Source: Heteronotia binoei (Eukaryota). From it: a stretch of 64,000 nucleotides of DNA. How positions within the stretch are numbered: the first letter of the stretch is position 1; each line of letters opens with the position of its first letter. A program made the translations under genes and the position numbers. Below are positions 923 to 41,168 of the stretch, piece after piece. Location of the stretch: assembly GCF_032191835.1 (NCBI RefSeq), contig NC_083230.1:75950001-76014000 (forward strand), given 5' to 3'. A model generated the notes under the pieces. It saw only the letters and a list, made by a program, of their open reading frames with translations, was not told where the DNA came from and did no database searches.

Positions 923-965
923 CTATAGAATTTGAAGCAAGCAAGGTTCAAGATTGCAAGCCTGT

Positions 966-1806: not shown

Positions 1807-1839
1807 CTATAACCCAGTCGTAATTAAATCAGTCTTAAC

Positions 1840-4219: not shown

Positions 4220-4363
4220 TGTTGTGTCTGGCGTTCGTCCCAGAAAGTATGGCACAGTGCACCTGTGAGCGGTACCTGAAAGGGATGAACGCAGCCCATC
4301 TATGACGATCTGTGGCGGGAAGCTTAACTGGCCAGGATTGGACCTGACCAGGAAGAAGGTTGT
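4220..4363 (+). repeat. Truncated 5' LTR of the Gypsy element
   Basis: Aligns to 8358-8489 (about 14 mismatches plus a 12-bp indel, manual count), then stops matching before TATA, polyA signal and PBS. Confidence 0.9.
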
Positions 4364-4402
4364 CCCTGCGATCCGAGCTCTAGTGCTTTCGTGGCCGAGG
4401 TC

Positions 4403-5260
4403 ATGGCTACTGCTCCCGGACAAACCCTACCGGCATTCGACGTCACCCAGCCCGACTTATGGGAATCATGGGTGGACCAGATCAACTACTACACAGAGCT
4501 GCACAAAATGGAGGCAGTGGGAGAGAAGAAGGCGCTTCTCCTGAGTTTGTGCGGGGTGGAGACCATCCAGCTGATGAAGCGACTCATCACGCCGACCACC
4601 CTCGCAAGGGCAACCTACGACCAGCTGGTCAAGGCAATGATGAACCACATGGCGCCACAGCCATCCCATCTCACACGCAGGTACGTGTTCTACATGAGAC
4701 AGCAGAGACAAGCTGAGTCCGCTGCCGAGTATCTTGCAGAGCTCCATGGTATCTTGCAGAGCTCTGAGATGTGATTTCACGGGGGACCTGGAAGAGATCC
4801 TGCTGGACCATTTCGCGGTTGGTGTCCGGGAGGAGAAAATGTGCCGAAAGTTGCTAGCAAACGAGGACAAAGACATCGACCTCACGAAAGCACTCCGACA
4901 GGCAACCGCCTTCGAACAAATGCACACCAGCTGCCGCTGCCTCGATCTCGGATGGCTTTGACGAGGAAGGGGCACATCAGCTTCGCCGCAAGCCAAGCAG
5001 CAGGCTGAAAACACCAAACCGACCATAGGCAGCGGAGAAGCTGAGCACCAAGTGCGCCAGCTGTGGGGACCCATGTGAGCACCGAGACTGCCCCTACCAT
5101 AACGTGGACTGCAGAAGCTGCGAAAAAGTGGGCCACATCGCCCAAGCTTGCAGGGCCAGACCCAACAGGAGGCCCCAGTCCACACATCACGACTCGACAG
5201 AGGCACACACGACGGCTGAAAACAGCATCCAGGTAATGAATTTGCCCCAGGACACCCCTG
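4403..5260 (+). pseudogene. Gypsy gag pseudogene with double zinc knuckle
   Basis: MATAPGQTLPAFD... capsid-like region, stop at 4772-4774, frameshifts; knuckles CASCGDPCEHRDC and CRSCEKVGHIAQAC. Confidence 0.85.
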
Positions 5261-8050
5261 ACAAGGTCAAAGTGCAGGTCTTGATTGAGGGGGGGGGGTT
5301 TCCCTGCCTGATGGAATTGGACACGGAATTCTCCATCTCCATTATTTCAGAGGAGACCCTCAGTAAACTCTGCCCCCACAACTGGTCAGCCCTGCGGCCC
5401 GTGGAGTTCATATTGCAGGACTTTCAAAAGAATCCAGTGCAGATCATGCGGTGGGCCAGAGTTCGGGTGGAGTTCAAAAATTTTAAAAGGGCCCTAGACA
5501 TTCTTGTGGTGAAGCGCCGGCTCACAACCCTATTGGGATTGGCTTAGCTTAAGCCCCTGGGCATGAAAATTGTAGGGATGAACCACATACAGGCCCACAA
5601 TTTTGACCAAGTGTGCCAGGAGTTCCTGGAAGTATTTGATGGGGCTCTGGGAACGTACAAGGGGCCATCTATCGCATTGCAGTTGGACCCTACGGTTAGG
5701 CCCTTAAGGCTGAAGGCTCGGCAGTTTCCGTTTGCACTTAAGCCAAAAATCGAAGCCGAATTGGACTGCCTCGTGGCCCAGGGAGTGCTACAGCCCATCT
5801 CCCATGTCACTTGGGAAAACCCAATAGTCACCCCAGTCAAACCGAACGGGGACGTGTGCATCTGTGCAGACTACATATGCACAATTAATAAAGCACTACA
5901 GGACCACCCATACCCTGTCCCGGTGGTCAGCCATGTCCTCGCCTCCCTGGCCGGTTCCAAGATTTTTGGGAAGTTGGATTTGGCCCAAGCATACCAACAG
6001 CTTCCGGTGGATGAGCAAACAGCTGAGCAAACAGACCATTGTTACACACCGGGAGGCTTTCAAGGTGCAGAGGCTACAATTTGGGGTCAGCATGGCTCCA
6101 GGAATTTTCCAAAGCTTAATGGACTCTCTCCTTAAAGGGATTCCCGGAGTACAACCCTTTTTCAATGACGTTTTGATAGCGGCACCAGATGCCGACGAGT
6201 TCTGCCGCCGCCTTCGAGAGGTGCTCCGCTGCTTCCAGAATGCGGGTCTCAAGGTGAAGCGGGAGAAGTGCTCACTTGGGGTGCCAAGGGTGGAGTTCCT
6301 GGGGTTTGTGGTGGACGCCGTAAGAATCCATTGGCCGACAAGACCAGGGTGATAGTACAGGCCCCGACCCCCACTTGCAGGGAGAAGCTACAAAGTTTTT
6401 TTGGGCCCCTGAACTTTTACCACACATTCTTGCCCCACGAAGCAGCCCTGGTCGAACCCTTACACAGATTCCTAGATAAGGGCGCCCCATGGTCTGGGGA
6501 AAAAAGACGGCTGCGGCCTTCCAGGCAGTCAAGGACATCTTGGTTTCAAATGAGGTTCTCCACCATTTTGACAAGTCCCTCCCCGTGATTTTAGCATGTG
6601 ATACTTCCCCTTACGGAGTGGGCGCCAGATGGGAGAGAGGTCCCCGTGGCCTATTACTCTTGCACTTTGACCCAGGGTGAGCACCCAGATAGATAAGGAG
6701 GCATTGGCAATCGCAGTGGGCATATACAAATTCAACAACTACCAATATGGTAGGTACTTCACGATTGCCACAGACCACAAGTCATTGCTCGGCCTACTCA
6801 CCCCAGACTGCCAGACACCACAGATCCTGTCGCAGCAGGTCCTGCAGTGGAACAAGTTCCTCAATTCATACACCAACAAGCTCGTCTACCGCCCCGGCAA
6901 GGCAATGGGCCACGCAGACACCCTCAGCCACCTTCTGCTGCCCCAGATGGACCCAGATCTGGCCTTGGCCCACCACATGATGCTCCTGGAGTCTTTGCCG
7001 GAGCAGCCCCTCCACGCAGTGGAGGTAGCCATGTCCACAGGCCGAGACCGCATCCTTGCACGCATTTCAGACTGGGTGGGGAGGGGTTGGCCCATGGGCA
7101 AATTGGACGCTGCATTCAGACCATTTGTTTCCTGCCGGGAATAACTTTCCTTACACAAAGGGTGTATTTTTGGGGGCAGCAGAGTGGTGGTTCCTCCCCC
7201 ACTCTGGAAGCAAGTGCTTGAAGCCTTGCATGAGACACACCCAGGGATATTGCGTATGAAAGCTCTGGCGTGGAGCTATGTATGGTGGCTGGGGATGGAT
7301 GAAGAGATTGAGGGGTGGGTTAGGAAGTGCCTGCCTGCCAAGAGTCCCAGCCGAATCTGCCCAGAACCCCCGTTCACCGCTGGGAATCCAATCGGGTACC
7401 ATGGTCCCGGCTACACTTAGACTTTGTGGGGCCATACCAGGGGCAAATATTCTTTATCTTGGTGGATGCTTACACAAAGAGGCTGGAGGTAATCCCAGTC
7501 ACTTCCACCTCCACCGCAGCCACAGTCAGAGCCTTACGGAGGGTTTTTTGCACCCATAGAATCCCCGACACTGTAGTGATGGACAACGGCATCACGTTTA
7601 CCTCCCAGGAGTTCCAGGAATTCCTGAATAGATACCTCATCCGCCACATACGGTCCACTCCCTTTCAACTGGCCACTAACAGCCAAGCGGAGCACATGGT
7701 TTGCACAACCAAGGAGGCCCTGGGTCACATAGTCCAAGGGAATTGGGACCACCGACTGTCCGCCTTCCTGTTTAGGAACAGGATCAACTCCAACCCCTAT
7801 GGACGTAAGCCCTGCCGAGTTATTCATGGGCAGGCAGTTAACCACCTGGCTAGATAGGTTACACCCCAACCGGGCCCCAAACCTTTGCAGCTCTCTCGAG
7901 ACCAGGGAGGCCACGAGGGGGTTCTTTCCAGGGGATCCAGTCTATGCCAAGAACTTTGCGAGCAGGCTGTGGATGCCATTTTGGGTGCTGCGGCTCACCA
8001 GGTTCCGCTCTTACGAGGTCTCGTTGGAAGGTGAGCAGCTCCTCCGCAGA
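5260..8050 (+). pseudogene. Gypsy pol pseudogene (protease, RT, RNase H, integrase)
   Basis: LDTEFS (DTG mutated); LDLAQAYQQL; FFNDVLI (YxDD mutated); LACDTSPYGVGA; HETHPG...C HHCC; LHLDFVGP/MDNG/QAE DDE; multiple frameshifts. Confidence 0.9.
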
Positions 8051-8357
8051 CACATAGACCATAGAGGAACCGGCAGGGCCAAGGGGAGTGGGGAACGGGG
8101 AGAGCACAGGGCCGCCGCAAGAAGCAACCCAGCTGAGCTCGCCGGGGTTGCTGGTGGAGGAGCCTTACAGGGCAGGGGAGATACCTCCGGAGGATCGAGA
8201 CAATGTTCTGCCAACCGCGGCCAAAAGCGGGGAACCAGCTGTTACAGAATCTCAGGCAGCAGGCCCAGCTCCCCAGATCAAACCTTGGTGGTCATTCAGA
8301 GAGTGGCGGTGGCCCGCTCATTTGAAAGACTATGTATCTTGAACTGGGGGGGAGGAG

Positions 8358-8598
8358 TGTTGTGTCTGGCGTTCGTCCTGGAAAGTACCTGTGGGCGGTG
8401 CCTGAAAGGGACAAACGCAGCCTGCCTGTGACGATCAGTGGTGGGAAGTTTAATTGGCCAGGATTGGACCTGACCAGGAAGAAGGTTGTTCCGGGAAATG
8501 TATATAACAGGGGACCCAGCCCTGCCATGTTGTCTTTGTGATGTACTCGTTAATAAAGTATGTTGCCATATGAACGTCTCCAACTTCAGTACATTACA
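8358..8598 (+). repeat. 3' LTR of the Gypsy element (241 bp)
   Basis: TGTTGTG start, TATATAA 8501-8507, AATAAA 8552-8557, ...ACATTACA end. Confidence 0.9.
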
Positions 8599-8674
8599 TA
8601 AAGCAAAGCAGCAAATTTTATGCTTGTCCAGTTTCAGCAGATGCTAACCATTCATCATCATGAACATGGTAATG

Positions 8675-8885
8675 CAGGGGTGGGGAACCTTTTTTCTGCC
8701 AAGGGCCATTTGAATATTTATAATGTCATTCGCGGGCCATACAAAATTATCAATTTAAAAAACAGTGCTCCGCCAAGGGAGAACGATTCAGGCTGACAAA
8801 ATTAATGCAAATAATTGTTTTTCTATTTGAAGTCTTGTGTGGAGAACCTAATTTGGCGTACTCCCCCTGGCCTGCCGCCCTAGGC
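8675..8885. mobile_element. hAT (Charlie-like) left-end fragment
   Basis: CAGGGGTGGGGAACCTTTTT...AAGGGCCA typical Charlie-group terminus; right boundary approximate. Confidence 0.55.
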
Positions 8886-8929
8886 AAATGCTAGAAAAAA
8901 GCTAGAAAATGCTAGAAAAAAGCTTTTTT

Positions 8930-9193
8930 TTGTAGAAAAAAGCTTTTTTTTTGTAGAAAAAGCTCAGCAGGAACTCATTAGCTTCTTAGACCACATCCCC
9001 TAATATTAATATATTAGGCCATACTATCTGGGATAATCAAGTGCAAACTGAACTGGTGGTAGCTGGCTCCCACCCTCCACCCCTGCCACCCCTTCCTCCC
9101 TCCCTTCATGCAGAAACTGCAGCTACTCCCAGCAGACCTTTAAAGGCACCCACATACCCCAGCAGCAGTCCTTCACAATGCCCACCACTCAGG
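8930..9193. mobile_element. hAT MITE family (CAGGGCTTTTT type), long left-end fragment
   Basis: Colinear with 34697-34973. Confidence 0.65.
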
Positions 9194-9306
9194 CTTACCA
9201 AGGGCCAGACCAAGTGATATCAAGGGGCCCTCGGGCCTGAAGTTTCCCACCCCTATGGTAATGCATAAATGGGTGAAGGTAGTTAATGTCCATTTGGTCA
9301 AAAAGG

Positions 9307-9383
9307 ACCTCTGCAGCTCCCCCAAGACCAGGGAGGCCAGAAGGGGGTTCTTTCTCAGGGATCCGGTCTATGCCAAGAACTTT
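9307..9383 (+). mobile_element. Orphan fragment of Gypsy integrase C-terminal region
   Basis: Similar to about 7882-7958 (ctgcagctc...gaccagggaggcca...gggggttcttt...gatcc.gtctatgccaagaactttg). Confidence 0.75.
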
Positions 9384-11069
9384 GTTTGGTACATCCATCA
9401 ACAGGTTGTTTGGTGCATCCATCAACAGCCATTTCACCACTCCTGTTTCAAAGAACTGTTTTAATTTCGATGCAGTACACAGTTTAAAGATGTTATACAA
9501 CAATGCAGCTAAATGGATTGAGAGTCCAGTCTGTTCTGTACAGAGTAAAATGAAAACAGCAACAAAGAAAATCCAAATTGTGCAACAATAACAAAAAGGA
9601 TCCATCTTTGTGGTTAGATTACACTGGTCAGAGAATGTCAACGGGTTGCATAATCTGCTGCTGGCAGGAGCTATACAGTTTGTGGTAGAATTTACCAGCA
9701 GTGTAAAGCACAAAGCAAAACAGAGTTGGACTTGCTGTGAGGGTTAAGAGGAGGTCTGTGCACCAAAGAAAAGGAATGGAAGCATTTAATCATCTGCTGA
9801 TGTTGCTATTCTTGCTTCAGTCATCCAAACAACCTGATGAAGTTCTGCAGGCTCTGAGAGAAATTTCTTGGCAGGTAGCAGCAGTGGATAGTTCAGTCAC
9901 TGGATAGTGAAATGGACAATTCTTTCTGTAGAATGTTCCTTCTGTGGCTAAAAGTCCTTCCTAAAGGTGTTTCTATTTGCAGAAATAAGAATAGGGCCCC
10001 ACGCTGTGTTTCCACTGCCCTTCTTAGATTAGAATCAGGGACAGTACTGCTTGAAGCACAAGGCTGGTACTGAGCCTTTGATTTAAATTAAATGTTAACC
10101 CTTCTGCATTAACTTACCATAATTAATTTGTTAAAGATCATTTCTGCTCAAGCTGGGTAATCATTGTGGAGAAACTATATTTCTATGGTTCCATGCCATC
10201 TTTAACAGCCAAGTATATAATTAAACAGTGTGATATAGCCCCTCATGTAAAAAAATCATGGTGTAGCCTTATCTGGTGGTAGGGAACCATGGTAAAGACT
10301 TTGCACCATTAAAACATTTCTTTTAGGATCCTGTAACTATGGAAGAGCCTTCTTCACCTTGGCCCACTTTAATGTTTTACCATCAGTTCTTTTGGAAGGA
10401 AGCTACTCATGTATCCCTTACCCTCAATATGCTCCTGCTAAATGGAAAAGGTGCAAACAGTCGATCATGTGTTATTGTATTGCCCTCTGTATAGGGACAT
10501 TGGAAAACATGGAGAATTGAGAGTTTCTAGCTAGAGTTAGTTTAAAAGCTGAGCCAGAAAGTTTTGCCCATGGAACTTCTGATTGCTTGGGGAAGTGAGG
10601 AGTTATTACCACTTCTAATCTTTACAAAGGAAGAAATGGATAGAAGGAGGATACCAATTTGTGAAAAGACAACAATGACAAGAGCTTATTTTAGCCTTCT
10701 TTCACAAGTCTACTTTAAAAATGTTATTTTTATGTGATTCTGGCATGTTGGACTGTTTTTGTGAATACTTCCACGTGAGTGCAGATTGCAATTCAACCTG
10801 TCTTGGAAAATCTTTGGAAAATGGACTGAAGTAGAATGCGATGACTCATAGTTTGGATAGATGAGAAAGCTGGACAAGGTAGCTTAGAAATTTAACAATA
10901 GACAGAATGCAATAGTCCAAGAGCACATGATGAATAACTAACATCATAAGGAAAGTTCAGGAGAATAGGACCCTTTCTCTAGAGCTCTCATCACCAAAGT
11001 CCATTCCCTTCTTGTTTGTGTTCTACGTGTGCCTAACATGAGAAATACAGCCCTGTGTGGCATGACAGG

Positions 11070-11847
11070 GCTGAGAACCAGAGAGGATTGTGAGGAACTC
11101 CAAAGGGATCTGTTGAGGCTGGGTGAGTGGGCAGATGCGGTTCAATGTGGCCAAGTGCAAAGTAATGCACATTGGGGTCAAGAATCCCAGCTACAAATAC
11201 AAGTTGATGGGGTGTGAACTGGCAGAGACTGACCATGAGAGAGATCTTGGGGTCGTGGTAGATAATTCACTGAAAATGTCAGGACAGTGTGCGTTTGCAA
11301 TAAAAAAGGCCAACGCCATGCTGGGAATTATTAGGAAGGGAATTGAAAACAAATCAGCCAGTATCATAATGCCCCTGTATAAATCAATGGTGCGGTCTCA
11401 TTTGGAGTACTGTGTGCAGTTCTGGTCGCCGCACCTCAAAAAGGATATTATAACATTGGAGAAAGTTCAGAAAAGGGCAACTAGAATGATTAAAGGGCTG
11501 GAACACCTTCCCTATGAAGAAAGGTTGAAACGCTTAGGGCTCTTTAGCTTGGAGAAACGTCGACTGAGGGGTGACATGATAGAGGTTTACAAGATAATGC
11601 ATGGGATGGAGAAAGTAGAGAAAAAGTACTTTTCTCCCTTTCTCACAATACAAGAACTCGTGGGCATTCGATGAAATTGCTGAGCAGACAGGTTAAAATG
11701 GATAAAAGGAAGTACTTCTTCACCCAAAGGGTGATTAACATGTGGAATTCACTGCCACAGGAGGTGGTGGTGGCCACAAGCATAGCCACCTTCAAGAGGG
11801 GTTTAGATAAAAATATGGAGCACAGGTCCACCAGTGGCTATTAGCCA

Positions 11848-11883
<36 letters not shown>

Positions 11884-11970
11884 TTGGCCGCTGTGTGACA
11901 CAGAATGTTGGACTGGATGGGCCATTGGCCTGATCTAACATGGCTTCTCTTAGGTTCTTATGTTCTTATG
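11070..11970 (+). mobile_element. CR1 LINE 3' fragment (RT C-terminus and 3' UTR)
   Basis: [43 protein letters not shown] motifs; (TTCTTATG)n tail; (GT)16 at 11850-11881. Confidence 0.95.
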
Positions 11971-12351
11971 ACCTATCATCTGAGATATTTATTGATTAAA
12001 CTTTTAGACTGCCCTCCCAAGGCTGAGGGTGGTGAACAACATTAAAACACATTCATAAATTAATAAAACCAGTTCAAAACAGTGAAATAATATATAGTTA
12101 AAACATTACCAGAGGGTGTCGGGGCTTTTTCCCCTGGGGGAACACAGTGGAATGGAGTTCAAGAATCTCTTTGTGGAAACAAAATTCTCAAAAAAATGTT
12201 TAAATGTTCATGAGGGGCGTTTATGTTTCTCCTTCATTTCCCTCATGTTTCAGAAAAAAAGCCCTGGATGGAACTAAATGTTAGGGACTTTAGGAGTATC
12301 TAGGATCCTTTCCTAGGACTTCCATCCCACCTGGTTTGACAAGGGGGGAGG

Positions 12352-12694
12352 TAGGGTTCACAGCTTCTTGCTGAGGGTGTGAGTTCCCCTGATTTGGGGC
12401 CCTCCAACCTGCCACCATTGAATTGGCTGGTGGGGGAACCCCGCCCCTGAAGAGTACTGGTGCTCCGCGACTTTTCTGGCATGATGACATCACCCAAAAG
12501 TGACATTAATGTTCTGGGCGCATTGCAGGGGGGGGGGGACACTGTAGTATTTTTTTGGGGGGGAGGGAAATCTATGACAATAATAGAGTATCCCCCTTGC
12601 AACGTCACTTCTGAGCGATGCCATCACACCATTCATGCTACGAAAGCCCAAAGAAAGTACCCCTGCAACGAGCCAGGTAAGACCTGGCAACCCT
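12352..12694. mobile_element. hAT (TAGGGTTGCC-type) MITE with internal tgacatca motifs
   Basis: TAGGGTTCA...TGGCAACCCTA termini; related to 23361-23793. Confidence 0.65.
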
Positions 12695-13399
12695 AAGGTG
12701 GGAGGAGTTGAAACTGGCAAGAACCCCATAATTTGAGAAAGAGGGGGGTATTCCAAAGTTTAAACCATTTATTGAAAGAAAACCATACTGTACACATTTC
12801 CAAGCAACAAGCAAGTTCAGTATTCATCTTACAAAAGGGGAAAGACAAACCAAATATTTATAACCAATAGTGCACTTTTATCTAATTAGGAATGCTTTCT
12901 GACACTGTATCAAGTCCTAACCACAGCGTCGGCAGAGAGCCCTTAGCATCTCAAACACTGGTGTTAAATACCTTTAGAGTCCAGATGGTGCGGATTAATG
13001 GTGAATCAAGAAATCAGGTGGTTCTGACATCACCCAGACCCTTCCCTTTTCTGAGTAGAAAACTCTGACCAGAGTCATTGCATTACTAGGTTAAAACACC
13101 CTCCCTGTCAAAAAAAGAGCTTGTAGCCACAGGTCTTCATATCTAGAAGTTTTGACTTCGAGACTGGAACTCATAAATGTAAACAGTTCTTTTTCAGCAG
13201 AGTGCAGGGTGTATTGTCAGACTTGGAGAACCTCCTGAAATGCCTTATGGAAGAGAGAAAAAACAGAAAAGCCTAAGCAAATTTAGGCTACTGTACAGAA
13301 CTATCCCCTGTTCACCACTAAAAATTCTGATTGTGCCACTGCCTCATGTGGGAGGTAGAAAATGTGGTGCAGGGAGAGTGCCAGATGAGGTGGAACCCG

Positions 13400-13700
13400 T
13401 TGCTGTCTTCAGCCAAAATCTTGGCAGAACATCTCTGCTTTGCACATCCTGTAGAACTGTGTTAGATCCTGCAGGGCATGGATGTTCTTCATCAGAGAGT
13501 TTCACCAGGTTGGGGCCAGGAGCAAAAAGGTCCTGGGACTGGTCAAGGACAGCCAGAAGTTTTTCAGGCTGGGGATCGCCAGTAGGTTCTTCTCTGCAGA
13601 GTGTAGTGTTCTTTCAGAAGTATACCAGAAGAGGAAGTCCTGAGATTTCTTGACTGGGGCTGTGATTACCTAAAGACTAAACTGATATTTTAAATTGCAC
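13400..13700 (-). mobile_element. Degenerate L2-type LINE 3' fragment
   Basis: ctggccccaacctggtgaaac...gccctgcaggatc shared with the other L2 3' ends in the window. Confidence 0.6.
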
Positions 13701-18573: not shown

Positions 18574-18894
18574 TTTTTAAGCCCTTTGGATTCAAGTGAT
18601 TTACAAAGGCCTAACTCTGTTTAGGATTGTATTTGATGGATCCCAAAGTAACAAAAGATTGAATAATGAGTTAATGTAGACCATCTTCCGTTATCTTTTT
18701 GTTTACAACTGAAGAAGTTTTTTTAAAAAAAAATGCTTGGCAGGATGTTGGTAATTAAACTGTTTTATTTATTTGCTTTCCCTTGAAAGAAAAGTCCTTA
18801 AAGTCATCTGGAAATTCTGCAAGCCTTTGGCCTGAGGCGGACATGGAAATGGCTGCCAGAACTGGATGTCTTTTGACACAAATGGAAAGTTTTG

Positions 18895-18973
18895 AACCGC
18901 ATACTGTGACAGTAGAATGGCAGTGTTTCAGGGACTCTCTGGCCAGGGGCCTGTTCTAGGCACCGAATATAAA
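18895..18973 (+). promoter_or_regulatory. OC3 proximal promoter: RUNX-type site AACCGCA (18895-18901) and TATA box (18968-18973)
   Basis: TATAAA about 90 nt upstream of the ATG; RACCRCA consensus match about 70 nt further upstream. Confidence 0.65.
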
Positions 18974-19064
18974 CTGCTGCTGAAAAGCAAAGCTCCCAAG
19001 AAGCTGCTGGGTTTTTCAAGAGAAGATTCATCTGTAGAAAGAGTTTTCTACAAGCAGGAAGAAG

Positions 19065-19131
19065 ATGGGAAATCTTCTGATGTTGCTTTTGCTTACTCTG
19101 GTGTTGACAGCCCCCTGCTGTTGTGAAGAAG
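19065..19131 (+). CDS. OC3: Osteocalcin-like Gla protein OC3/Bgp2, exon 1 (signal peptide MGNLLMLLLLTLVLTAPCCCEE)
   Basis: aagATGG Kozak context; hydrophobic signal peptide ending CCCE; phase-1 donor G|GTAAGA. Confidence 0.85.
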
Positions 19132-20094
19132 GTAAGAGAATGTGACCTGGATAAATAGTATTACTTAGCATTTGCATAACAGAATACTTGTGAGTGTTTA
19201 AAGACCTTCACATACATTATCTTGTAATTCAAAAATCCACTATGTCAGACAGATCAGCAGTAGTATCCCCATATAACAGATAGGAGCTGAGAGAGAAAGT
19301 GGCTTGACTGAGTCCATCTTGGAGTATTCATGGCTAAAATTCAAAACAGAGACTGCTTGATTTGAAGTTCTGTCTCCTAGGCGGCAATCTTACGAATGCT
19401 TTCCTAGGTCTAATTGCCATTGAATAAAATGTGACTTACTTCTAAGTAGGCCTGCATAGAATCATTCCCTTAGCCACTATGCTATATAAGTGATCAAACC
19501 ATGATTTTTCATGGGAGCCTGGCAATGTATTCAGACTCTAGCTCAGAAAAGGACAAATTTTATAGAGATAGAATCACAAAACCATTCTTCTCAAACTTGC
19601 TTCAGTTGTGACTGGTATGCTTGCCAATAGTGAACCTGACCATTTGGATGTCCCATGTCCACAAAGTAGCTTTCATCTGGCCTGTTTCATCTGTTATAAC
19701 CACAGCTGTGAAAATAGCCAGCCAGGCAGAGAAATACTTACTTGGAATGAGATTCTGGTGGAAACTGAGCTGGATGTCATACAAAGACTAACAAGGGACA
19801 TCAGAGCCATAAACTTATGCTAATTTTACACTAGTTTAATTCTTGTCTTATAAAAAAAATTACTTTTGCATTTAAAAACATTACAGCTTGCTCAGAGAGG
19901 TTCATAATAATAATGGCTTCTCTCCCAAAGAATCCTGGAAACTAGAAAGGATGCTAAGAACTCAAAATGATAGTAAGGGTCTCTAAAACCTACCCTTCCT
20001 AGTGTTTCTTGGGGTGAAGAAAGACTACCTGTGCAGCCCAATCCTATGAAAGGTTATTTTAAGTTAAATCCTACTGAGTTTAATATAGCTTACT

Positions 20095-20229
20095 CAGGGT
20101 TTTGTTTGTAGAACAAGCCCATTTTCATTTTGTTTGTAGAACAAACTCATTTTCATATTAGGCCACACCCCCTGACGCCAAGCCAGCCGGAACTACGTTC
20201 CTGTGTGTTCCTGCTCAAAAAAAGCCCTG
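20095..20229. mobile_element. hAT MITE (CAGGGCTTTT family)
   Basis: Perfect 8-bp TSD AGCTTACT (20087-20094 / 20230-20237). Confidence 0.85.
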
Positions 20230-20491
20230 AGCTTACTCATAAAACATGCATAAGACAACAAGAGTAGTTGCTTATACAAGCGTTATTCACGAATGATATG
20301 GGAATACATGCACCCACAGATGGACAAGGATGAAAGGAGTAAATCTTCCCCTTGGAGTAACTCCTGAATTTCACACAAGCAAATATCAGCTATTATTTAC
20401 ATCACATAAAATGCCCTTATGAACAGGAAGCTGATGAACAGAAGCACCATCCTCTGGCTAGTCTACTTTCCTTCATGAATCAGATTATATG

Positions 20492-20973
20492 TAGGGTTGC
20501 CAATCTCTTGTTGGAGGCAGGGGATCCCCCCACTTCAGGGTTATCAGAAAGCAAGGGGGGGAATGTCAGCCTTTTATATTATACCCTACAGAGACCATTT
20601 CCCACAGGGTATAATGGAGAATCAATCCAGGAGTATCTGGGGCTCTGGGGGGGGGGGGCTGTTGATGGAGGTAGAGGCACCAAATTTTCAGTACAACATC
20701 TGGTGCCTCTCTTCAAGAAACCTCCCAAGTTTCAAGACGATTGAATCAGGAGCTACAATTCTATGAGCTCCAAAAGAAGGTTCCCCATGCTCCATTATTT
20801 CCAATGAAGGGAAGGCACTTAAAAGGAGCACAGTCCCTTTAAATGTGATGGCCAGAACTTTCTTCAGAGTTCAATTGTGCTTGTCACAACCTTGCTCCTG
20901 GCTCCATCCCCAAAGTCTCTTGGCTGCTTCCCAAAGTCCCCAGATATTTTCTGAGTGGGACCTGGCAACCCTA
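20492..20973. mobile_element. hAT (TAGGGTTGCC family) MITE, older copy
   Basis: Both termini present; body homologous to 32528-33039; no clean TSD. Confidence 0.75.
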
Positions 20974-22149
20974 TCTGACACATCATGGAACTATTTTTAA
21001 AACGTCAGTTGACTAGGAGTCCATATACATATGCCTTAGCTGTTTCTGGATGTTTTTACAAAGAACGTGTTACGAATTTATAAATTCAGGTATCCCAAGA
21101 GAATGTGTGTGCCCAGATAAATAGGGGAGACAAATAAGTTCCTGCTTCTTATGCTTTTTCATAAGGTGCACTCAGATGGGCAGGTTGCCGTGGCATTATC
21201 TTGCCATGTGAGTTTGGAGTAGTTTATGTTGATCAGACAGTGCCTCCTAAGCTATCATCATAGTGTCCATGGTTGGTTGTCCACACGGTTAATGCGCTGC
21301 AACCACAGATCCAGGGCTGGATTGGGTGTTTATTTTTTCAAATTCCCGCTGTGCATGTGCAGAAGCAGACAAGTGCCACACATGCTTCTGGCTGGTTCTA
21401 GGGGGGCACTGAAGCACACATCAGAATGTGGTTGGGGGAAAAAAAGAATACACTGAAAATTGAGTGGAATGATCACATTGTTCATTAGTTTCCATGGCGC
21501 ACTGAGGCAATCAGGCAGTTGGAAACATGCCATGGAAGCGCTTCACTGGGGTAGCCACTGGTATTTGCTGGCGGCTATCTAATGCATGTGGGAGTCCTTT
21601 TAGCACAAGGTAAGGACGAGTAGAGCATGGGAGTCAGATGTGCCCATTTGATTGTGCCCATTTGATCCGGAGGGGAGGGATGGCTATGTTGGGCCATACT
21701 GCTGATGTGATCACACCCAAAGTATCTTCAACCTTGATATTTAAGGGGACAGAAGCAAGAGGAGCAAGCCCTGTTGGGGAAGAAATGATTTGGCTTTCTC
21801 CCTTATCAGGCTTTTGGTGTGCTTTGACAGTTTGAACAAGAGTGAGCTAGTAGATGCTACATACTTGGAATTCCAAAACAGACACACACACACACAAACA
21901 AACAAACACACACACACGCATGCACACACACACACAGACAGAGTTTCTGGCAAAATCCCTTACCACAGATTTCAGAATATAGAAGGCATGTGATGAGTGG
22001 GTGTGTCTTCTTGTGGATTAGTAATTGGTTAAATAACCCACAGCACAGGACAGAAGAAAATGGCTTGTTCTGCATTAGGCATTATTTTAAAAATATTTTA
22101 CAGTAATGCATAAATAAGTACAGCTCTAGGATGTGGTTTTGGTCACCCC

Positions 22150-23030
22150 TTGGCATAGATCTGGAAAAAAAGCAGAAATGGTTAACCAAAATGATCAAGG
22201 GGTTTCTTCTGTCTAAGGAAGGCTAAATAATCATCTGTTTTTAAGAAAAAGGATATGAAAGGGAGAGGGATATAACAGAGGTTTGTAAAATTATGTATAA
22301 TGTTGAAAAAGTGGAGAGATCACCTTACTAGAATTCAGGGACAACAAAGTTGATGGAGAATAAATTCAAGAAAGACAAACAAGAGGGGGTGTCAAGCATG
22401 CGGGTTCAATGACGAGTCGAAGTTGATACCAAGACTACGTTTATTGATAGACCGATACTTTCTGTGTAACAGATTCTTGAGAGTAGGGTTGCCAAGTCCA
22501 ATTTAAGAAATATCTGTTATACCCCTCTCCCTTTCATATCATAACACACACAACATATACTTTCAATCCATTTTCAATGCACTTTACAACTGGATTTTAC
22601 TGTGTGAACTGGCAAAATTAAGTTGGAAAGTGCATTGAAAGTGATTTGAAAGTGTATTATTTAGTGTGTGATCGCAGAATAGTATTTTATCACATAGCTA
22701 AATTATGGAATAAATTAGATAATATTCAAGATAGACAAAGGAAGTATTTTATCATATAACTTACGGAATTTACTGTCAGAAAATGAAGCTGACTACTAGT
22801 TTTAAATGGTTGTAAATGGTGATTAGAAAAATTCATGAATGCTATGTCTATCAATTGCTATTAGGTATGGTGGCAAAATGAAGCCTGCATGATCAGAAGC
22901 AGGATGCCCCATAGTGTCAATTGATGGGTGCCTCTACATCTAATTTGTTGCCTTTGTCCAGGCATCTAATCAGCCACTGTGGGATAATGGACTAAATGAA
23001 TCTTCAGCCTGCTCCATTAGGGCTCTTATG
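22150..23030 (+). mobile_element. Highly degenerate CR1 3' fragment interrupted by an LTR end, a hAT end and a MITE (about 22385-22680)
   Basis: aaaatgatcaagggg, gacaaaggaagtatttt, gggctcttatg CR1 remnants. Confidence 0.5.
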
Positions 23031-23201
23031 AGTTCATACCATTGGCTTCTGAACAAACTGTCAATGGCAGAAAATTATTTGGGAGTGCTTTATAACTTCT
23101 TTTATTTGTTTTAAATTATGGACTACCTTAAGTGCTTAATAAGACATGGTGGTATATAAATGTGACACTGGTTTTATTCTATCTCTTCTGTTGTTTTCCA
23201 G

Positions 23202-23225
23202 ATACAAAGAGGCCCTTGGGTGAAA
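23202..23225 (+). CDS. OC3: OC3/Bgp2 exon 2 (24 nt, (D)TKRPLGE)
   Basis: Long polypyrimidine tract ending ttccAG; donor A|GTATGT; phase 1-1 keeps the frame; read-through hits TAA, so the exon must end here or at the weaker GTGAAA donor 6 nt earlier. Confidence 0.65.
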
Positions 23226-23360
23226 GTATGTGGCATCCATAAGTTTCCAAAGTCCTCTTTGAACCCAATTTGCAAAACAGGCTTTTGCCAAATCTATGGG
23301 AGACAGGTTGTTGTCACTGCATTTGATTTTTGTGGATCCTCCATAACTGGCTGCTAGTAA

Positions 23361-23793
23361 TAGGGTTGCCCAGTCCCCCGCAGCTTCTGGCGAGGGACTT
23401 TTTTCACATGCGCATTGCACGCATGGTGCAATGACACCACCCAGAAGTGACATCATCACATTGGTGACACTGTGTGCTGGCTGCTCTAGGTGTTTCTGGG
23501 AAAACTATGGTTTTTCTGGATGCTCCAGTGATTTGGGAGGGAAAAACTTCATGGCACCTATTGTACCATAGAGTTGTTCCTCCCAAATCACTAGAGCGTT
23601 CGAGAAAATAATAGAGTTTTCTCAGAAATGCCTAGAGTGGCTGGTATACAGCGTCGCTGGCACAATGACATCACTTCTGGGTGACATCACTGTGCCGGTG
23701 ACGTCAGGGGAGGTTCCCCCCACTGGCCGAATGTGGACCAGTGGGTTGGGAACCTCCAGGGCTAAAGAACCCCCACCCGACTTGGCAGCCCTA
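23361..23793. mobile_element. hAT (TAGGGTTGCC-type) MITE with internal inverted repeats
   Basis: Termini TAGGGTTGCC/GGCAGCCCTA; GCTGCTAG on both sides (left copy offset by 3 nt). Confidence 0.75.
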
Positions 23794-24039
23794 GCTGCTA
23801 GATGTGTTCGCCAGTGTAGCCATCTTTTTTTTTAAAAGCAGGGTTATTGAGCCTTTAATTAGTTTATGACAGAAAAAATCCAAAAGGTTCATCTTTTCCC
23901 AGCAATGAGGTACATTGATAGTAGAACCTTAATCTGTTTTTCTGCCACACAGCTCTTAAAGACTCAGAAGTCCTTCTGCAAAAAGTTGACAACCCTAACT
24001 AAATCTAGTATTATTGTTCAGGCTTATCATAAGTGGATT

Positions 24040-24225
24040 TTTTTTATTTACTTCATTTATACCCTGCCTTTCTCCCCTTTGGGAGGGGCCCAAAGCAGCT
24101 TACATCACTCTCCTCTCCTCCGTTTTATCCTCACAACATCCCTGTGAGGGTAGGTGAGGCTGAGAGAGTGTGACTGGCCCAAGGTCACCTAGCCAGCTTC
24201 TGTGGCAGAGTGGAGATTTGAACTA
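24040..24225 (-). mobile_element. Squam3-like SINE (5'-eroded)
   Basis: ttatcctcacaacatccctgtgagg...gactggcccaaggtcacc body with (TTTA) tail. Confidence 0.75.
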
Positions 24226-25879
24226 ATTTTATTTACTTATTTTATTGTATTGTATTTATATCCCATCCTCCCCTGACAGGCTCAGGGTGGCTAAGGTCTC
24301 CCAGATCCTACACCAACTCTCTTCCAATTATATTTGGCTGGCTGTCATGCTTGGTTTCTAGAGAGGCCATATCTGTTTCCTTCAGTATATGGAGGGAACA
24401 TGGTCTAGGGCTTTGCTCCCCCCCTTCCAATCCTTGCAAGAACTCCATTAGGAAAAAATCCCTTTTGGCCCTCCGGAGTTCCTCTGACCTCACATGTGGA
24501 GGTAAATTCTGACAAATAATATTCCTATTGAAGCTCATTCTGGAATTTCCTCTGAGAGCCAAACAAAATGGAGGAACTCTACAAGGGGGCCTGTGATTTC
24601 TGGCACTGCTTAAAATAATTTTTAAACCTGTTTACATGTTATAAGACACCTGGCATGAACTCAGTTTGCCAATTAGTCCCCCAGTGAATAAGCCCCCTGT
24701 TAGCCAGACACACTGGGCAGTCTCTTGCCTGCTGGTCTAGTAAACGATTAGGAAAGACATTCTCCCCAAGCCGCAGACAGACTGGTTTAGGACCCATTTC
24801 CATAGGCTTGGGAAGTGGAACATCTCCAGTGGACTATTAGATGCTGTAGAGAACACCTTTACGTATTCTTATTTCTTGAGATGCATTTATATATTGCCTT
24901 CCTGACAGTGCATTCAAGGTGGCTTACAATTCAAAATAACACCTACAATGTAACACATACAAGTCAAAAAGGCAAAGGGAAATGAAAAGGAAGTGCAAAA
25001 GAAGCACATTCAAGTACTTAGATAATTGCATGGAAATAATGGCATTCTGCCAGGGAGATGGGCAATCTGGATTTCAAAACAGAGGTGAAGAATGGCAATA
25101 TGTCAGGCAGGTGCAGAGGCACAGGTAAGCTAAGGTCATTCATGGTCATGCCCCTTTCTCTCTGAAACAAAACATGGCAATGAGGTACTTGGCAAGTTCA
25201 ACATCTTCTATTGACTACACTCAAAAGTGTACCATTTCACAGTATTTGATGGTTGTCATATCAACAGCATTTACCATCAGATAGTACTTGTGAGCTGATG
25301 AATAATCGTATTTGCATCTTGCAGTGTGATAGAGTACATTCAACAGGAATAGTGTTTTGAAAGCTGACAGCTTCTGGCCAAAAGTGTTAGAGAGGCCAAT
25401 AAAGTGTTCAAATTTCATACCCAAAATGTGAATTTGAATTTCCCTTCAACATTTCTCATTTGACTGGTGAAACTGTTTTCTCCCCCCTCAAATTGCAACC
25501 AGTTGTAAATATTAGCACTGTGATGAGGAAGACACTGCTTTGTTGACTTGAATGAATGAGAACCCTCTCCTGGAGGGAAAGCACCTGGCAGTGGGGTGAG
25601 ATGGGGAACTTGTGCTGTGCAAGTAGGAACGTGAGGCTTCCACTAAAAAAGAGAATGCAGACAAATAAGTCCTTCTCATGACTAACATCCCTGTCTCACC
25701 TGCATCTCTCCTTTCCTCTAGTAACTCAGGTTCATGAAGTTAAACACCTGAGTGTATTAGGATGACTATATTAAGCTCACCCAGGGATGACAGGTCTCTC
25801 CAGCCTATACCTAATACTTCATCCACTGCAACATCTCTTTGCAGCTAGCAAACCAGGACTTGAGCGGGGGAATAGGTCT

Positions 25880-26250
25880 AAATACATGTTGATGGGGTCT
25901 GAACTGGCAGAGGTTGACCGGGAGAGAGATCTTGGAGTCATGATAGACAACTCACTGAAGATGTCCGCTCAGTGTGCAATTGCAGTAAAATGGCAAATGC
26001 TATGCTGGGGATTATTAAGCAGGGAAATGAAAACAAACCAGTCAATATCATAATGCTTCCGGTATAAATCGATGGCGCAGCCTAATTTGGTATACTGTGT
26101 ACAGTTCTGGTCACCATACCTCCAAAAATGATATTATAGCATTGGAAAAAGTGGAGAAAAGGGCAACTAAAACAATTAAGGGGATGGAACACATTTCCTA
26201 TGAAGAAAGGTTAAAGAGGTTAGGGCTGTTTAGCTTGGAGAAATGATGAC
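25880..26250 (+). mobile_element. CR1 RT C-terminal fragment (degenerate)
   Basis: ERDLGVMIDNSLKMSAQCA; similar to 11200-11560. Confidence 0.85.
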
Positions 26251-26699
26251 TGTGATCTCACCTTTCCTACCACCACTGTATAGATTTCTTTGTCAGCAAA
26301 GAAGATCCTTTCTGTCAGCAAAAATGAAAACAGAGGCATATTTGCAGCCATCCTTTGGCAAGCTGAAGTGCTTTGTGACTTTTGATACAGGTCCCCACTA
26401 GTTCACACATATTACCTGAATCAAGACAAGCCTAAAATGACTCTGGAGGTCTGGAGCCTTCTTCCCTCTTTTTGTAATGGCTGTACTGGTAAGCTTGGCC
26501 AGTGGCATGTGTGGTCAGGAAGCCCTCCCATTCTGCTGCAAGAGGAGTGTGTCAGCAGCCGTACATAGTGCCAACCTACTTACTCCATAAAATACACATT
26601 TGAGCTTCAGAAATAGTTGGTTATTAGAGATTTTCCCCCTGCTTTAGTTGAACCATTTGGCTATTATTCTCATACTGTCGCATGTTATTTCCACCACAG

Positions 26700-26772
26700 G
26701 AATTAAGATAGATAAGGAAACTGCCAATGCCTTTGTGAGGAGGCAGAAAAGATCCTATCCATATTATGAAAG
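26700..26772 (+). CDS. OC3: OC3/Bgp2 exon 3 (IKIDKETANAFVRRQKR|SYPYYE; propeptide and furin site)
   Basis: cacAG acceptor; AG|GTAAGA phase-2 donor; ANAF motif and RQKR proprotein convertase site. Confidence 0.92.
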
Positions 26773-26940
26773 GTAAGAGTCTCTTCCAGGCTTTAATGTT
26801 GATATCCATAATTAATGTCTAATCTAAAGGCTGCACAGGCTGTAGAAAACCCTGAGATGCTTGCATATGTCACTCTGCATATTCATCGCACATACAACTC
26901 CATGGATTAACCAGAAGAAAGAAGAGTTGCAGGAGACATA

Positions 26941-28083
26941 GGGCGATTCCGCATTGGCCTTTGCTCCGGCTCCGACGCTGTGTTTCCCCCGGGGCAGATG
27001 TTGGTTTCTGCACATTTTGACCTGGGGCGGCAGTTTGACCCGCCTCCGAAGCGGTGCTGCCCCAGATTAAAGAGATCAGCAAAATACCAGATCTTTTTTT
27101 TTGCTGCGGTTCCGAGGCTTGGAATTTTATGTGTGGAACTTGAGCCACTGCGCTGTCAAACTTCTTGCATCAGTAGAACACACACATACCTCCACGCCCA
27201 TGATTCCGCCCAGTTATCTCATCATACTTCCACAATTTTACTCCCTTTGAAAATTATGCTATATTTTCCTGAAATGGATTAATTTTGTTTTAAAAACAAC
27301 TTGTTTCGCATTACAACGCAAAAATATAGCGATGTAACGCTATTTTCTTTTTTCAAATGCATCAATTACTTGCACCCGCCCCCTTCTTTACTATATTCCA
27401 CGTGAATTTGTTAGCCATTGCATTATGATTACGTTCTTCCCCCCTCTGAAAAAAATCAATCCTGACTGCTATATTTTTTCCAAATAAGATCGTTGCAACG
27501 CAACTAAATAAAAAGCAATGTTGCACAAACTACTTTAAACATGCGTGATTGCCACCTTTATCAATCCCCCCCCCCATGGCCTCAAATGGGAGCGGAAATT
27601 TGATTATGTCTACAGCTTTATATTTTTGATAGGTTGGGGAAACTTTCTCCCTTAACCCCTCTGCATATTTCTTCCCCCCCCCCTTTCACGCATCTGTTTG
27701 TAATTTATTATAGGTTTTAACGGAAAACTGTGGGCTTAACATTCAGCGTGTGTGGATAAAAACGGTGGATCGCCGACTCAGATTTCATGGGGCTTAACCT
27801 GCCAATGGCAGGTTGAAAGGAAAACACGTGACTTTGCCAGTATTATGCCTCTGGCAAACAAAGACGTTACGTAGTAACGCGAACACGCATGCGTGTAAAA
27901 AAAAAGGGAAATGTATGAGGGAGGGGGAAACTCCGGGAGCAGCGGTAATGCGGAATCAGAAAGCATGGAACAGATTGGGAATTGAATCCGGGGGAAATCC
28001 TCTAATGCGGAATTGGGAAATCTGGCCTGCATGGAACAACCCCGGAGTGAAAGGAGGGCAAACGCCAAATGCGGAATCAGCCC
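26941..28083. mobile_element. Harbinger-like non-autonomous element (about 1.1 kb) in OC3 intron 3
   Basis: Termini GGGCGATTCCGCAT / ATGCGGAATCAGCCC; CpG-retaining interior. Confidence 0.65.
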
Positions 28084-28556
28084 TTGTCTCTTCCTTAACT
28101 TAGCCATTCTCCTCAGCTGAGGGTAGATTTAAACAGGCCTCAGATTCAGTGGGAGCTCACAGGAGTGCAGCTCCTAAACCTTTCTGAGAGTTCCACCTCC
28201 TCCTTCTGAGAGTCCCACCTCCTTGTCCATTGAATAGTATGTGCGGCTGCATAACAATCCCTGGATGAACACCACCTATTATTCTACAAAATGATCCCTG
28301 GATTTAAATATCTCTTCTCCCATTTAGAGGTATCAAAGTACCTAGGGCAGTAGGTGTCACATTTAAAAAGCCCTTTGCATTAGCTTAAATGTGGCCAGCA
28401 TCTCCACGTGGAGGCCAGCAGATGGGAGGGATGTGTGGTGTAGGTAAGAAGATGCTGCATGTGCTTGGACTGACACATATGGCTTGTCAGATAACGGTAA
28501 CAATTATGGCTACAGAGTTCCAGGGTAGATAAGAGATTCCATTCCCTGTGTTGCAG

Positions 28557-28686
28557 GTACTATGAAATGTTTAAGTCTCCAATGGAGACGAAGCATGAAC
28601 AGTGTGAAAACTATGCACCTTGTGACTACTACTCTGAAATAATAGGATTTCAAGCAGCATATTCCCTTGTTTTTGGAAGAACCTGA
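28557..28686 (+). CDS. OC3: OC3/Bgp2 exon 4 (Gla domain YYEMFKSPMETKHEQCENYAPCDYYSEIIGFQAAYSLVFGRT*)
   Basis: ttgcAG acceptor in phase 2; ExxxExCExxxxC motif and IGFQxAY typical of the osteocalcin family; total CDS 294 nt = 97 aa. Confidence 0.95.
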
Positions 28687-28750
28687 AGGTGATCGTTTCA
28701 TGATCTCAGCTGGATGGAATCTCTACACGGAGCCATTGGAAGGGAGAGCA

Positions 28751-28756
28751 AATAAA
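28751..28756 (+). terminator. Probable OC3 polyadenylation signal AATAAA
   Basis: First AATAAA, 65 nt after the stop codon. Confidence 0.55.
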
Positions 28757-29731
28757 TGGGAAACAACACTGGTTTCACATTACTGGTACAAGTCCTGCAA
28801 TCATTATTTATGCAGACTGTCTACTTTGCATTCAGGAAATAAGAAGTAAAACACTAATCCTTTGTTCTGGGGGCATCCCTGCCAATAATCAGTTCCACAA
28901 TCAATCTCCAATTTATTTGGATGTCATGGAGGGGGTGGCAGAGGTAAAAGGGTCAAGAATCTACTAAGTGAATAAACACAGATGATTTCCAGGACTGGCC
29001 TTTCTAGCAGGAGCCCTGAAGCAATATCAGTACCCTAAGTGCTGAAGTTTCTCAGAGTTGAAATGATGGCATAAGAATTTTGGACAGGAGGTACAAACTT
29101 TCTGTGCACAACCCAAATCTGACTTTGTTAAAATACTTTTCAGCTGTTTCTAGCTCTAGTTAATTATTTCAGTGTTTTTAATTTTTTTTCTTTCTTTCTA
29201 GAAATAGTGAAATAGTCACATAGCCAGTTTGATTTCCTAGACATCATTTAGGACTTACAAAGCTATGTAACAGTGAAGGTATTTCTTTCATGTTTTAGTG
29301 GTCCTTACTGGAATTGCCGCAAAGCTAAATCTGATTGGCTACATGAGGATCTCACTCTTTCTAGCAGAATGGTGCCTGAAGTAGCAGCCAATCAAGTACC
29401 AAGAAGGAGAATGCTGCAGGTTCATGTATAACAGAAGTTCCCAGCCTTTTGGTGTGGTGACCCACAAGTCCAAATGCATTTGGTGTGGTGACCCATCCAT
29501 GGCTGGCCCAAGGGGTTTTTTTTACACCCTAGGTAAACTATGACCTTGGCACACTTCTAGTTCAGCATTCCCTTTTTGACAGTGGCTAACCAGATATTTT
29601 TGCGAAACCAATAAACATCACACAAAGGGTGCAACTGCTCCCACTGTAAACCCCAAGCAAGTGTCTTACATTCTAGCCTTTGACCACCCTCTCCTGCTCC
29701 ATTACTCTTTTAAATCCCCCAAAGAGTCTAA

Positions 29732-36462: not shown

Positions 36463-36903
36463 NNNNNNNNNNNNNNNNNNNNNNNNNNNNNNNNNNNNNN
36501 NNNNNNNNNNNNNNNNNNNNNNNNNNNNNNNNNNNNNNNNNNNNNNNNNNNNNNNNNNNNNNNNNNNNNNNNNNNNNNNNNNNNNNNNNNNNNNNNNNNN
36601 NNNNNNNNNNNNNNNNNNNNNNNNNNNNNNNNNNNATAAAAGCAAATAGGAAGGAAAAAGACTGGCAGAAAGAAAGAAATAATGAATGCATGAAAGGGAG
36701 GGAGGGGAGAAGGTTGGAAACAAATAGAGAATAAAAGGAATAGAAAGGAAATAAGAAGAAAGGAAAAGGANNNNNNNNNNNNNNNNNNNNNNNNNNNNNN
36801 NNNNNNNNNNNNNNNNNNNNNNNNNNNNNNNNNNNNNNNNNNNNNNNNNNNNNNNNNNNNNNNNNNNNNNNNNNNNNNNNNNNNNNNNNNNNNNNNNNNN
36901 NNN
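36463..36903. other. Two assembly gaps (36463-36635 and 36771-36903) flanking a purine-rich island
   Basis: N runs of 173 and 133 nt. Confidence 0.99.
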
Positions 36904-40151: not shown

Positions 40152-40940
40152 TCACTGCAATTTGTCGATGATGAGTGTGACATACTCTTCGGCTTTCTTA
40201 ACAACACTTTGGAAATTTTCACAAGCTGGCTTCAATACCTTAACAGCATCTTCCAAGTAATCTGCAGCTATTTCATAGCTGTTCTTGGATGTCTGCCCCC
40301 GGAGAACTACCTGCATGAAGCTGGTGAGTGAGTGAGTTATGGAAGATGTAGACTGAGTGCGAGCCTTTGCTCCAGTTTGTGTAGCTGGAGAAGATGAAGT
40401 GCTGGTTTCTGGAAAAGCTTTAGCAATTTCATTAGCAATTTCATCATGGGTCATGAGAAGATCACCAACTTGCAGGGACATCGCAGGAGAGTTCACTAAC
40501 AACCGCAAGGTAGACTGTAGTGTTTCAGGGAGATTACTGTTTTTCAATAAGACTGTAGCAATGGGACCACAGATCGTTGCAAAAGATCCCTTATAGAGGC
40601 CATAGATCTCCTTCACAAGATTGATTTTTTCATCCATGGCAGAAACAGGTAGAAGGATCTTAGAGTACAAAGGGCCACTGACACACTGCTGGACATCCTT
40701 ATCTTTCAACTCCACAGTCTCTTGCATGCCTTTCAGAGCACTCAACAGAAGCTGAAGGTTCTCCTTGATACTGAGGTTTTCTCTCACAACAACATTGGGA
40801 AATTCAGTTCCAAGGTACTGGTTGAGCATTCGGAACATGGTGTTGGTGGAAGAGGCGAAGACATAGACACAATCGTACAGAGTATGGCTGGCTTTGCACA
40901 GCCGCTGCTTATCCTTCTCTGCACAAAACAAGGACAGCAT
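40152..40940 (-). CDS. C12orf60: C12orf60 homologue (262 aa, single coding exon)
   Basis: AEKDKQRLCKAS resembles human SEKDKERLIQAA; C-terminal AADYLEDAVKVLKP resembles AADLLEQIVKAMGP; acceptor tttcAG at 40963; synteny with SMCO3 and WBP11. The first 45 aa of the listed ORF are intronic or UTR. Confidence 0.9.
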   Translation of the reverse strand: MLSLFCAEKDKQRLCKASHTLYDCVYVFASSTNTMFRMLNQYLGTEFPNVVVRENLSIKENLQLLLSALKGMQETVELKDKDVQQCVSGPLYSKILLPVSAMDEKINLVKEIYGLYKGSFATICGPIATVLLKNSNLPETLQSTLRLLVNSPAMSLQVGDLLMTHDEIANEIAKAFPETSTSSSPATQTGAKARTQSTSSITHSLTSFMQVVLRGQTSKNSYEIAADYLEDAVKVLKPACENFQSVVKKAEEYVTLIIDKLQ

Positions 40941-41168
40941 TTCCAAAGAGGGAGAGGCCACACTGAAATAAAAAGCAATCAGTACTAAGTGTACGAAAAT
41001 CAGTTTCAAGTCTATCTCATTTTTAAACATCCACAAACCTCCAGCAGCCACATTATACAAAATAAAAAGAAGCAAAAGTTATTCAATATTGAGCAAGACA
41101 TTCATAAAAAGATTCCAAAGACTCCTACACTTAAAATTACATTTTTTAAAAATTTTTTAAATAACTTG

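Follow-up and report, generated by a model that had tools for sequence, protein, structure and literature searches.

The closest described relatives of the gene treated here are matrix Gla protein (MGP), osteocalcin (BGLAP, or Bgp1) and Bgp2, formerly OC3. According to Leurs et al. (2021), Bgp2 always lies within the Mgp locus, in all tetrapod Bgp2 genes, and frequently lacks annotation or goes under the name Mgp-like, for instance in Pogona and the tiger snake (PMC8006282). It has been lost in mammals, it is reported from squamates, and no description of its expression was found for any tetrapod (PMC8006282). Here we analyze a gene of this family in the gecko Heteronotia binoei. The window is a stretch of 64,000 nucleotides, positions 75,950,001 to 76,014,000 of the forward strand of contig NC_083230.1 (assembly GCF_032191835.1), and short coordinates refer to positions within it. 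A four-exon gene on its plus strand, with a TATA box at 18968 and a polyadenylation motif ending at 28756, is very probably an intact squamate orthologue of Bgp2 (chicken OC3) that has stood beside MGP since an ancient tandem duplication.

The finding adds no new gene. The locus is almost certainly already in the public annotation of H. binoei, where NCBI lists a 'matrix Gla protein-like [Heteronotia binoei]' (P0002) of 89 amino acids (aa) that agrees at 100% identity with the translated exons 1, 3 and 4, lacks the 24-nucleotide (nt) exon 2 and carries a precomputed match to PF25890 (BGLAP_C). The initial annotation, which was made from the sequence alone, had called the gene hidden and invisible. 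That description fits only the bacterial-style track of open reading frames (ORFs) and not the public record, and the view of the gene as hidden or new fails both on the existence of the NCBI model and on the published Bgp2 lineage in squamates (PMC8006282).

The coding sequence (CDS), rebuilt by script, comprises 294 nt over four exons, and its translation gives a protein of 97 aa that is identical to the one written out in the initial annotation. The TATA box, the four exons in phases 1/1/2, the canonical splice sites, the open frame and the AATAAA described there all hold at their coordinates. The proximal promoter and 5' untranslated region (18800-19064, plus strand) include TATAAA at 18968-18973. 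The coding part of exon 1 (19065-19131, 67 nt, phase 1) begins with the ATG at 19065, encodes a predicted signal peptide, MGNLLMLLLLTLVLTAPCCC, together with the first part of the propeptide, and is followed by the donor GTAAGA; it has the same length in Gekko, Elgaria and Lacerta. Exon 2 (23202-23225) is a microexon that encodes DTKRPLGE of the propeptide, with an acceptor ending in TTTTCCAG and the donor GTATGT. Exon 3 (26700-26772, 73 nt; acceptor ending in CCACAG, donor GTAAGA) encodes an ANAF motif, which is likely a gamma-carboxylase recognition site, then RRQKR, a furin-type site, and SYPYYE, the start of the putative mature peptide. The coding part of exon 4 (28557-28686, 130 nt including the TGA at 28684-28686) follows an acceptor ending in GTTGCAG and encodes a predicted Gla (gamma-carboxyglutamate) domain, with Glu17, Glu21 and Glu24, Cys23 and Cys29, and a GFQAAY helix, in osteocalcin register. 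All four exons are on the plus strand, and every intron is GT..AG with a pyrimidine tract before its AG. The 3' untranslated region runs from 28687 to 28756 (plus strand) and ends in AATAAA (28751-28756), a candidate poly(A) signal. CDS lengths of 67/24/73/130 nt were likewise recovered from the genomic loci of Gekko japonicus, Elgaria and Lacerta (last exon 127 nt in Lacerta).

Homology searches place this protein in the osteocalcin family. Searched on its own, exon 4 hits solved osteocalcins (best E 2e-4) as well as human MGP (2.6e-3), and it aligns to osteocalcin in the register of the 49-residue mature hormone. A search with the full 97-aa protein returned 21 close relatives, and a profile search returned 135 proteins from squamates, turtles, birds, alligator, frogs and caecilians, which bear the public names 'matrix Gla protein-like', 'osteocalcin-like' or 'osteocalcin'. 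Orthologue E-values range from 1e-52 to 1e-20, from geckos to caecilians. A chance ORF is ruled out by the osteocalcin match of exon 4, by the orthologues at E 1e-52 and by the shared exon layout. The phases 1/1/2 and the ExxxExC motif that the initial annotation had taken as marks of the family are present in the gene, and the MGP and BGLAP genes of H. binoei itself also have phases 1/1/2.

The sequences for the phylogeny came from a profile search that covered 1.84 billion representatives and yielded 78 family members, the key ones of which were named via clusters; the maximum likelihood tree (IQ-TREE) contains 60 rows and 101 alignment columns, and its deep forks are weak. Chicken OC3 itself is outside the tree, and the orthologues of quail and turkey, close relatives of chicken, serve as stand-ins. 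The protein of H. binoei is sister to that of Gekko japonicus (100/97) and nests within squamates (97/94) and within sauropsids (100/93). Together with amphibian (frog and caecilian) and sauropsid proteins, including those of quail and turkey, it forms the Bgp2 clade of 32 rows (99/89). Bgp1 and Bgp2 together have support of 96/85, with the candidate inside and MGP outside. The Bgp2 clade is starred in the tree, as is the three-way assignment to Bgp2, Bgp1 or MGP. The Bgp2/OC3 identity given in the initial annotation thus agrees with the tree, which sets the candidate apart from both the Bgp1 and the MGP clades. Identity with Bgp1 was rejected: the species has its own BGLAP, which falls in the separate Bgp1 clade (99/94) and lies on another contig (C1). 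The MGP of H. binoei likewise groups within the MGP clade, apart from the candidate.

Two further observations concern the members of this tree. The lungfish 'osteocalcin' (P0121) has a Bgp2-like N-terminus, SYYDYVERYYEQFKTP, and occupies a basal branch of the group formed by Bgp1 and Bgp2; its accession number is near that of the lungfish MGP, which suggests neighbouring genes and bears on the timing of the Bgp1/Bgp2 split. The Bgp2 proteins of alligator (P0065) and emu (P0120) have degenerate C-terminal halves in which the GF..AY helix or the Cys spacing is altered, and Bgp2 may be decaying in some archosaurs.

In its features the candidate resembles described Bgp2/OC3 genes most closely. 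Like them, it lies beside MGP, has four exons in phases 1/1/2, an RxKR site, an N-terminus of the type SYxYYERYYE, the ExxxExC motif and the Cys pair, and its clade includes quail, turkey, turtle, snake, lizard and amphibian proteins. Unlike them, it has a gecko-specific C-terminus, IIGFQAAYSLVFGRT, and its exon 2 is 24 nt long, whereas the version in birds and turtles is longer. With osteocalcin (Bgp1) it shares the register of a 49-residue mature peptide with Glu17/21/24 and Cys23-Cys29, and its predicted three-helix core superposes on crystal structures at 0.8-2.4 A. The two differ in that Bgp2 is a different gene whose cleavage site and ANxF motif are less far apart, by about nine residues, whose N-terminus is Tyr-rich with two extra invariant Glu (6 and 10), and which has NYAPCDYYSE at the place of the Bgp1 core signature.

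Searching the whole genome in six frames with exon 4 revealed two further family members, and gene models for both were built from splice sites. The first lies 35.5 kb upstream of the candidate's exon 4, on the same contig and strand, and its matching segment reads as MGP exon 4; the resulting MGP gene (C8, the window's contig, 75938911-75943148) encodes 102 aa with an ESHESMES motif and a basic tail. The second, on contig C1 (256555887-256561390), reads as classical osteocalcin and has four exons encoding 98 aa. This BGLAP has KRQTR before the mature peptide, where RxKR is usual, and ELSVDCDE in place of ELNPDCDE.

With the MGP of the species in hand, the candidate could also be read as a lineage-specific MGP duplicate that inhibits calcification in the way MGP does, remaining uncleaved and bound to the matrix. 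The two genes adjoin on the same strand, both have four exons in phases 1/1/2 and an ExxxExC...C core, the ANxF motif resembles the internal carboxylase site of MGP, and the public names are 'matrix Gla protein-like'. However, the tree groups the candidate with Bgp2 and with Bgp overall, not with MGP, and the candidate has an invariant R-x-x-R cleavage site, whereas MGP has no cleavage site before the Gla region. The candidate also lacks the remaining MGP traits, namely the ESxES serine motif, the uncleaved propeptide and the basic C-terminal tail, all of which are found in the MGP of H. binoei. Nor is the gene lineage-specific, because its orthologues reach back to amphibians. We regard a lineage-specific MGP duplicate as so improbable that it deserves almost no weight.

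The gene order around the candidate agrees with its assignment to Bgp2. On the same strand, 26 kb separate the MGP stop codon from the candidate's ATG downstream of it, so that the MGP expected upstream of the window by the initial annotation is indeed there. Downstream are two single-exon DUF4533 genes arranged head to head, one at 40152-41075 on the minus strand (PF15047, E 2.4e-33), a marker of MGP-locus synteny, and the other at 52202-52972 on the plus strand (PF15047, E 8.5e-37). DUF4533 is the family of human C12orf60 and SMCO3, which flank MGP on 12p12.3. The order in Elgaria and Lacerta is a 105-aa BGLAP_C protein, the orthologue of 96-97 aa, and then a minus-strand DUF4533 gene; the order MGP, candidate and two DUF4533 genes in H. 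binoei agrees with it.

Selection was assessed with the CDS of three orthologues (Gekko, Elgaria and Lacerta) taken from genomic loci. The ratio of nonsynonymous to synonymous substitution rates (dN/dS), calculated by the Nei-Gojobori method, is 0.17-0.29 over the whole CDS, a sign of purifying selection across squamates, the comparison that the initial annotation had proposed. For the mature peptide it is 0.06-0.25, the value against Gekko being 0.06. Among 36 Bgp2 sequences the invariant residues are the Ala of ANxF, both Arg of the cleavage site (R37 and R40 in the numbering of the 89-aa model), Glu6, Lys13, Glu17, Glu21, Cys23, Glu24 and Cys29.

The TATA promoter is conserved across squamates as well. 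The 270 bp upstream of the ATG have a mean column identity of 82% among four squamates, in all of which the GAATATAA block and several longer upstream blocks are invariant. Jukes-Cantor (JC) divergence of the promoter between the gecko and Elgaria or Lacerta is 0.29-0.33, about half of the synonymous divergence (0.57-0.90). The blocks that are invariant in the four squamates between 18800 and 18960 are AGCCTTTGGCCT, AAATGGCTGCCAGAA, CAAATGGAAA and CTGGCCAGGG.

These features suggest how the product might be made and what it might do. The protein would be a secreted pre-pro-peptide from which the signal peptide is removed. Its short propeptide would dock the vitamin-K-dependent gamma-carboxylase through the ANAF-type motif, and a furin-type protease would cleave after RRQKR, the RxxR site just before Ser49, for which cleavage is predicted. 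Numbered from Ser49, the product would have 49 residues with Glu17, Glu21, Glu24, Cys23 and Cys29, in the motif E-TKH-E-Q-C-E-NYAP-C, that is, ExxxExC with a second Cys six residues on. In the register of human osteocalcin, Glu17/21/24 would probably be carboxylated to Gla, and Cys23-Cys29 would form a disulfide within a three-helix core. The Gla surface of the released peptide would bind calcium and hydroxyapatite, and further Gla sites may be provided by Glu6 and Glu10 of its Tyr-rich N-terminus.

An AlphaFold2 model of the 89-aa form, made with 36 aligned relatives, has a mean predicted local distance difference test (pLDDT) score of 79, rising to 88-96 over the Gla region, and predicted helices at 55-65, 67-76 and 78-86. 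Among PDB entries it comes closest to osteocalcin crystal structures, with template modelling (TM) scores of 0.84-0.90 by target, a root-mean-square deviation of 0.8-2.4 A and Foldseek E-values of at least 0.3; on so short a domain the latter do not reach significance, and the fold is therefore used as a consistency argument only.

A more specific possibility is that Bgp2 is a distinct five-Gla peptide (the three canonical sites plus Glu6 and Glu10 of SYPYYERYYE) that acts mainly in soft or non-bone mineralising tissues beside MGP, and whose propeptide microexon is being lost in this gecko lineage; this proposal is tentative, and we think it rather less likely to be correct than not. In chicken, OC3 and MGP are both among the differentially expressed genes in brain nuclei, a soft tissue (PMC12208832). 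OC3 also appears among the differentially expressed genes in spleen and other soft tissues; in no paper of this set, that on brain nuclei included, was the gene itself the object of study. These soft-tissue lists are a hint that the gene is not restricted to bone. The roles in osteoderms, endolymphatic sacs, eggshell and the tail that the initial annotation had suggested were overstated.

Besides the Foldseek values, several points weigh against the reading of the gene as an intact Bgp2 orthologue. Scanned against a copy of Pfam that lacks PF25890, the pieces from exons 3 and 4 gave no match. Processing, carboxylation, cleavage, mineral binding and the tissue of action we infer by analogy with the described family members. 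Among the sequencing runs listed for exon 4 were small-share runs of other species and none of H. binoei, and for a 2.2-kb query no run of any kind was listed. The runs that bear on splicing come from relatives only and were guessed to be RNA, although their spliced contigs are hard to explain otherwise. The exon 2 donor has lost its -1 G and its +4 A and is weaker than the ancestral donor, and inclusion of the exon produces an Arg codon at the junction, where 18/18 aligned relatives have Gly. The Pfam scan of full-length orthologues also gave nothing relevant, the classical Gla model being silent on so short a domain.

Transcripts of relatives bear on the splicing of the gene. Contigs of four weakly matching runs were compared with window positions 23000-28900. 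One contig in each of three runs (one of organism A and two of organism B, from three studies) skips from 26772 to 28557 with GT..AG, at the predicted exon 3-4 junction; the contigs are about 8-10% divergent from the window and thus derive from related species. The contig of organism A contains 70 further letters before exon 3; of these, the 30 shown agree letter for letter with the last part of exon 1 and with exon 2 in Gekko japonicus, so this transcript was spliced 1-2-3-4. The contigs of organism B stop fitting near 28748, and that of organism A continues past 28897. Both tests by which the initial annotation could have been refuted, the tree and the spliced transcripts, favour it, the latter in relatives: the 26772/28557 junction occurs in two related species, in one of them with the end of exon 1 and exon 2, and no run of H. 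binoei was listed.

The state of exon 2 bears on which protein predominates. At the end of the exon and its donor, Gekko and Elgaria read GAAG/gtgagt, Lacerta reads GAAG/gtaaga and the window reads GAAA/gtatgt. The window donor matches the expected outcome of a 4-bp GGTG deletion (23218-23237) that is present only in the window among the four squamate genomes compared. With the new GT, exon 2 keeps its 24 nt and its frame. Skipping of exon 2 restores the Gly at the junction and keeps the frame, and isoforms without exon 2 also occur among the gene models of turkey, a brown snake and a wall lizard; the model of the gecko Euleptes lacks it as well. The mature peptide is the same in both isoforms, because exon 2 lies within the propeptide.

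Within the Bgp2 reading there is accordingly a choice between the 89-aa exon-2-skipped isoform and the 97-aa four-exon form as the main product. The former equals the NCBI model and also the Euleptes model in its lack of exon 2, and it avoids both the donor altered by the deletion and the replacement of the invariant Gly by Arg. On the other side, exon 2 preserves the frame, its acceptor is strong and its GT donor can be used, and the transcript of a related gecko includes it. Exons of 24 nt are, moreover, often missed by gene-prediction pipelines. We give the 89-aa form an even chance of being the main product; judged from the donor, exon 2 may be largely skipped in H. binoei, with the 97-aa form minor.

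The same deletion could instead be the first visible lesion of a gene that is intact by sequence but is a silent or decaying relic. The lack of any listed RNA run of H. binoei in the run searches is compatible with silence, and the degenerate C-termini of alligator and emu indicate that loss occurs in sauropsids. Yet nothing interrupts the reading frame, no splice site is broken, dN/dS of the mature peptide against Gekko is as low as noted above, the TATA box and the promoter blocks have been preserved, and skipping of exon 2 is in frame and is modelled as an isoform in other species. A relic is in our judgement very unlikely, and an intact Bgp2 orthologue is preferred.

The remaining features of the window are repeats and gaps. 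Intron 2 contains an interspersed repeat resembling a short interspersed element (25880-26255, no strand assigned), of about 375 bp; the genome contains at least 7425 candidate copies of it, which are about 84-85% identical. Introns filled with transposable elements, as in the initial annotation, are thus borne out for intron 2, the only one checked. Contigs of all runs pile up at this repeat and again at 23985-24378. Between MGP and the candidate are retroelement pol remnants at 6677-7857 on the plus strand (RT_RNaseH at 6677-7144, integrase core at 7327-7857), and no further matches came from the numerous overlapping ORFs of 800-13700. Among ORFs of at least 70 aa in the interval from the candidate to the DUF4533 genes and beyond 53 kb, no Pfam match to ART4 or to other genes was found. 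Runs of N at 36463-36635 and 36771-36903 are assembly gaps or masking.

What is gained is modest. The name can be corrected from 'matrix Gla protein-like' to Bgp2/OC3, a candidate 97-aa isoform is described that is outside the public model, and a lineage-specific donor deletion is recognized that predicts skipping of exon 2. A small spliced gene was, moreover, recovered correctly by a reader working without tools. The Bgp2 family is a real gap in knowledge, and squamate Bgp2 is well suited to functional work because its promoter and mature peptide are strongly conserved, its expression in tetrapods is undescribed and the gene is absent in mammals.

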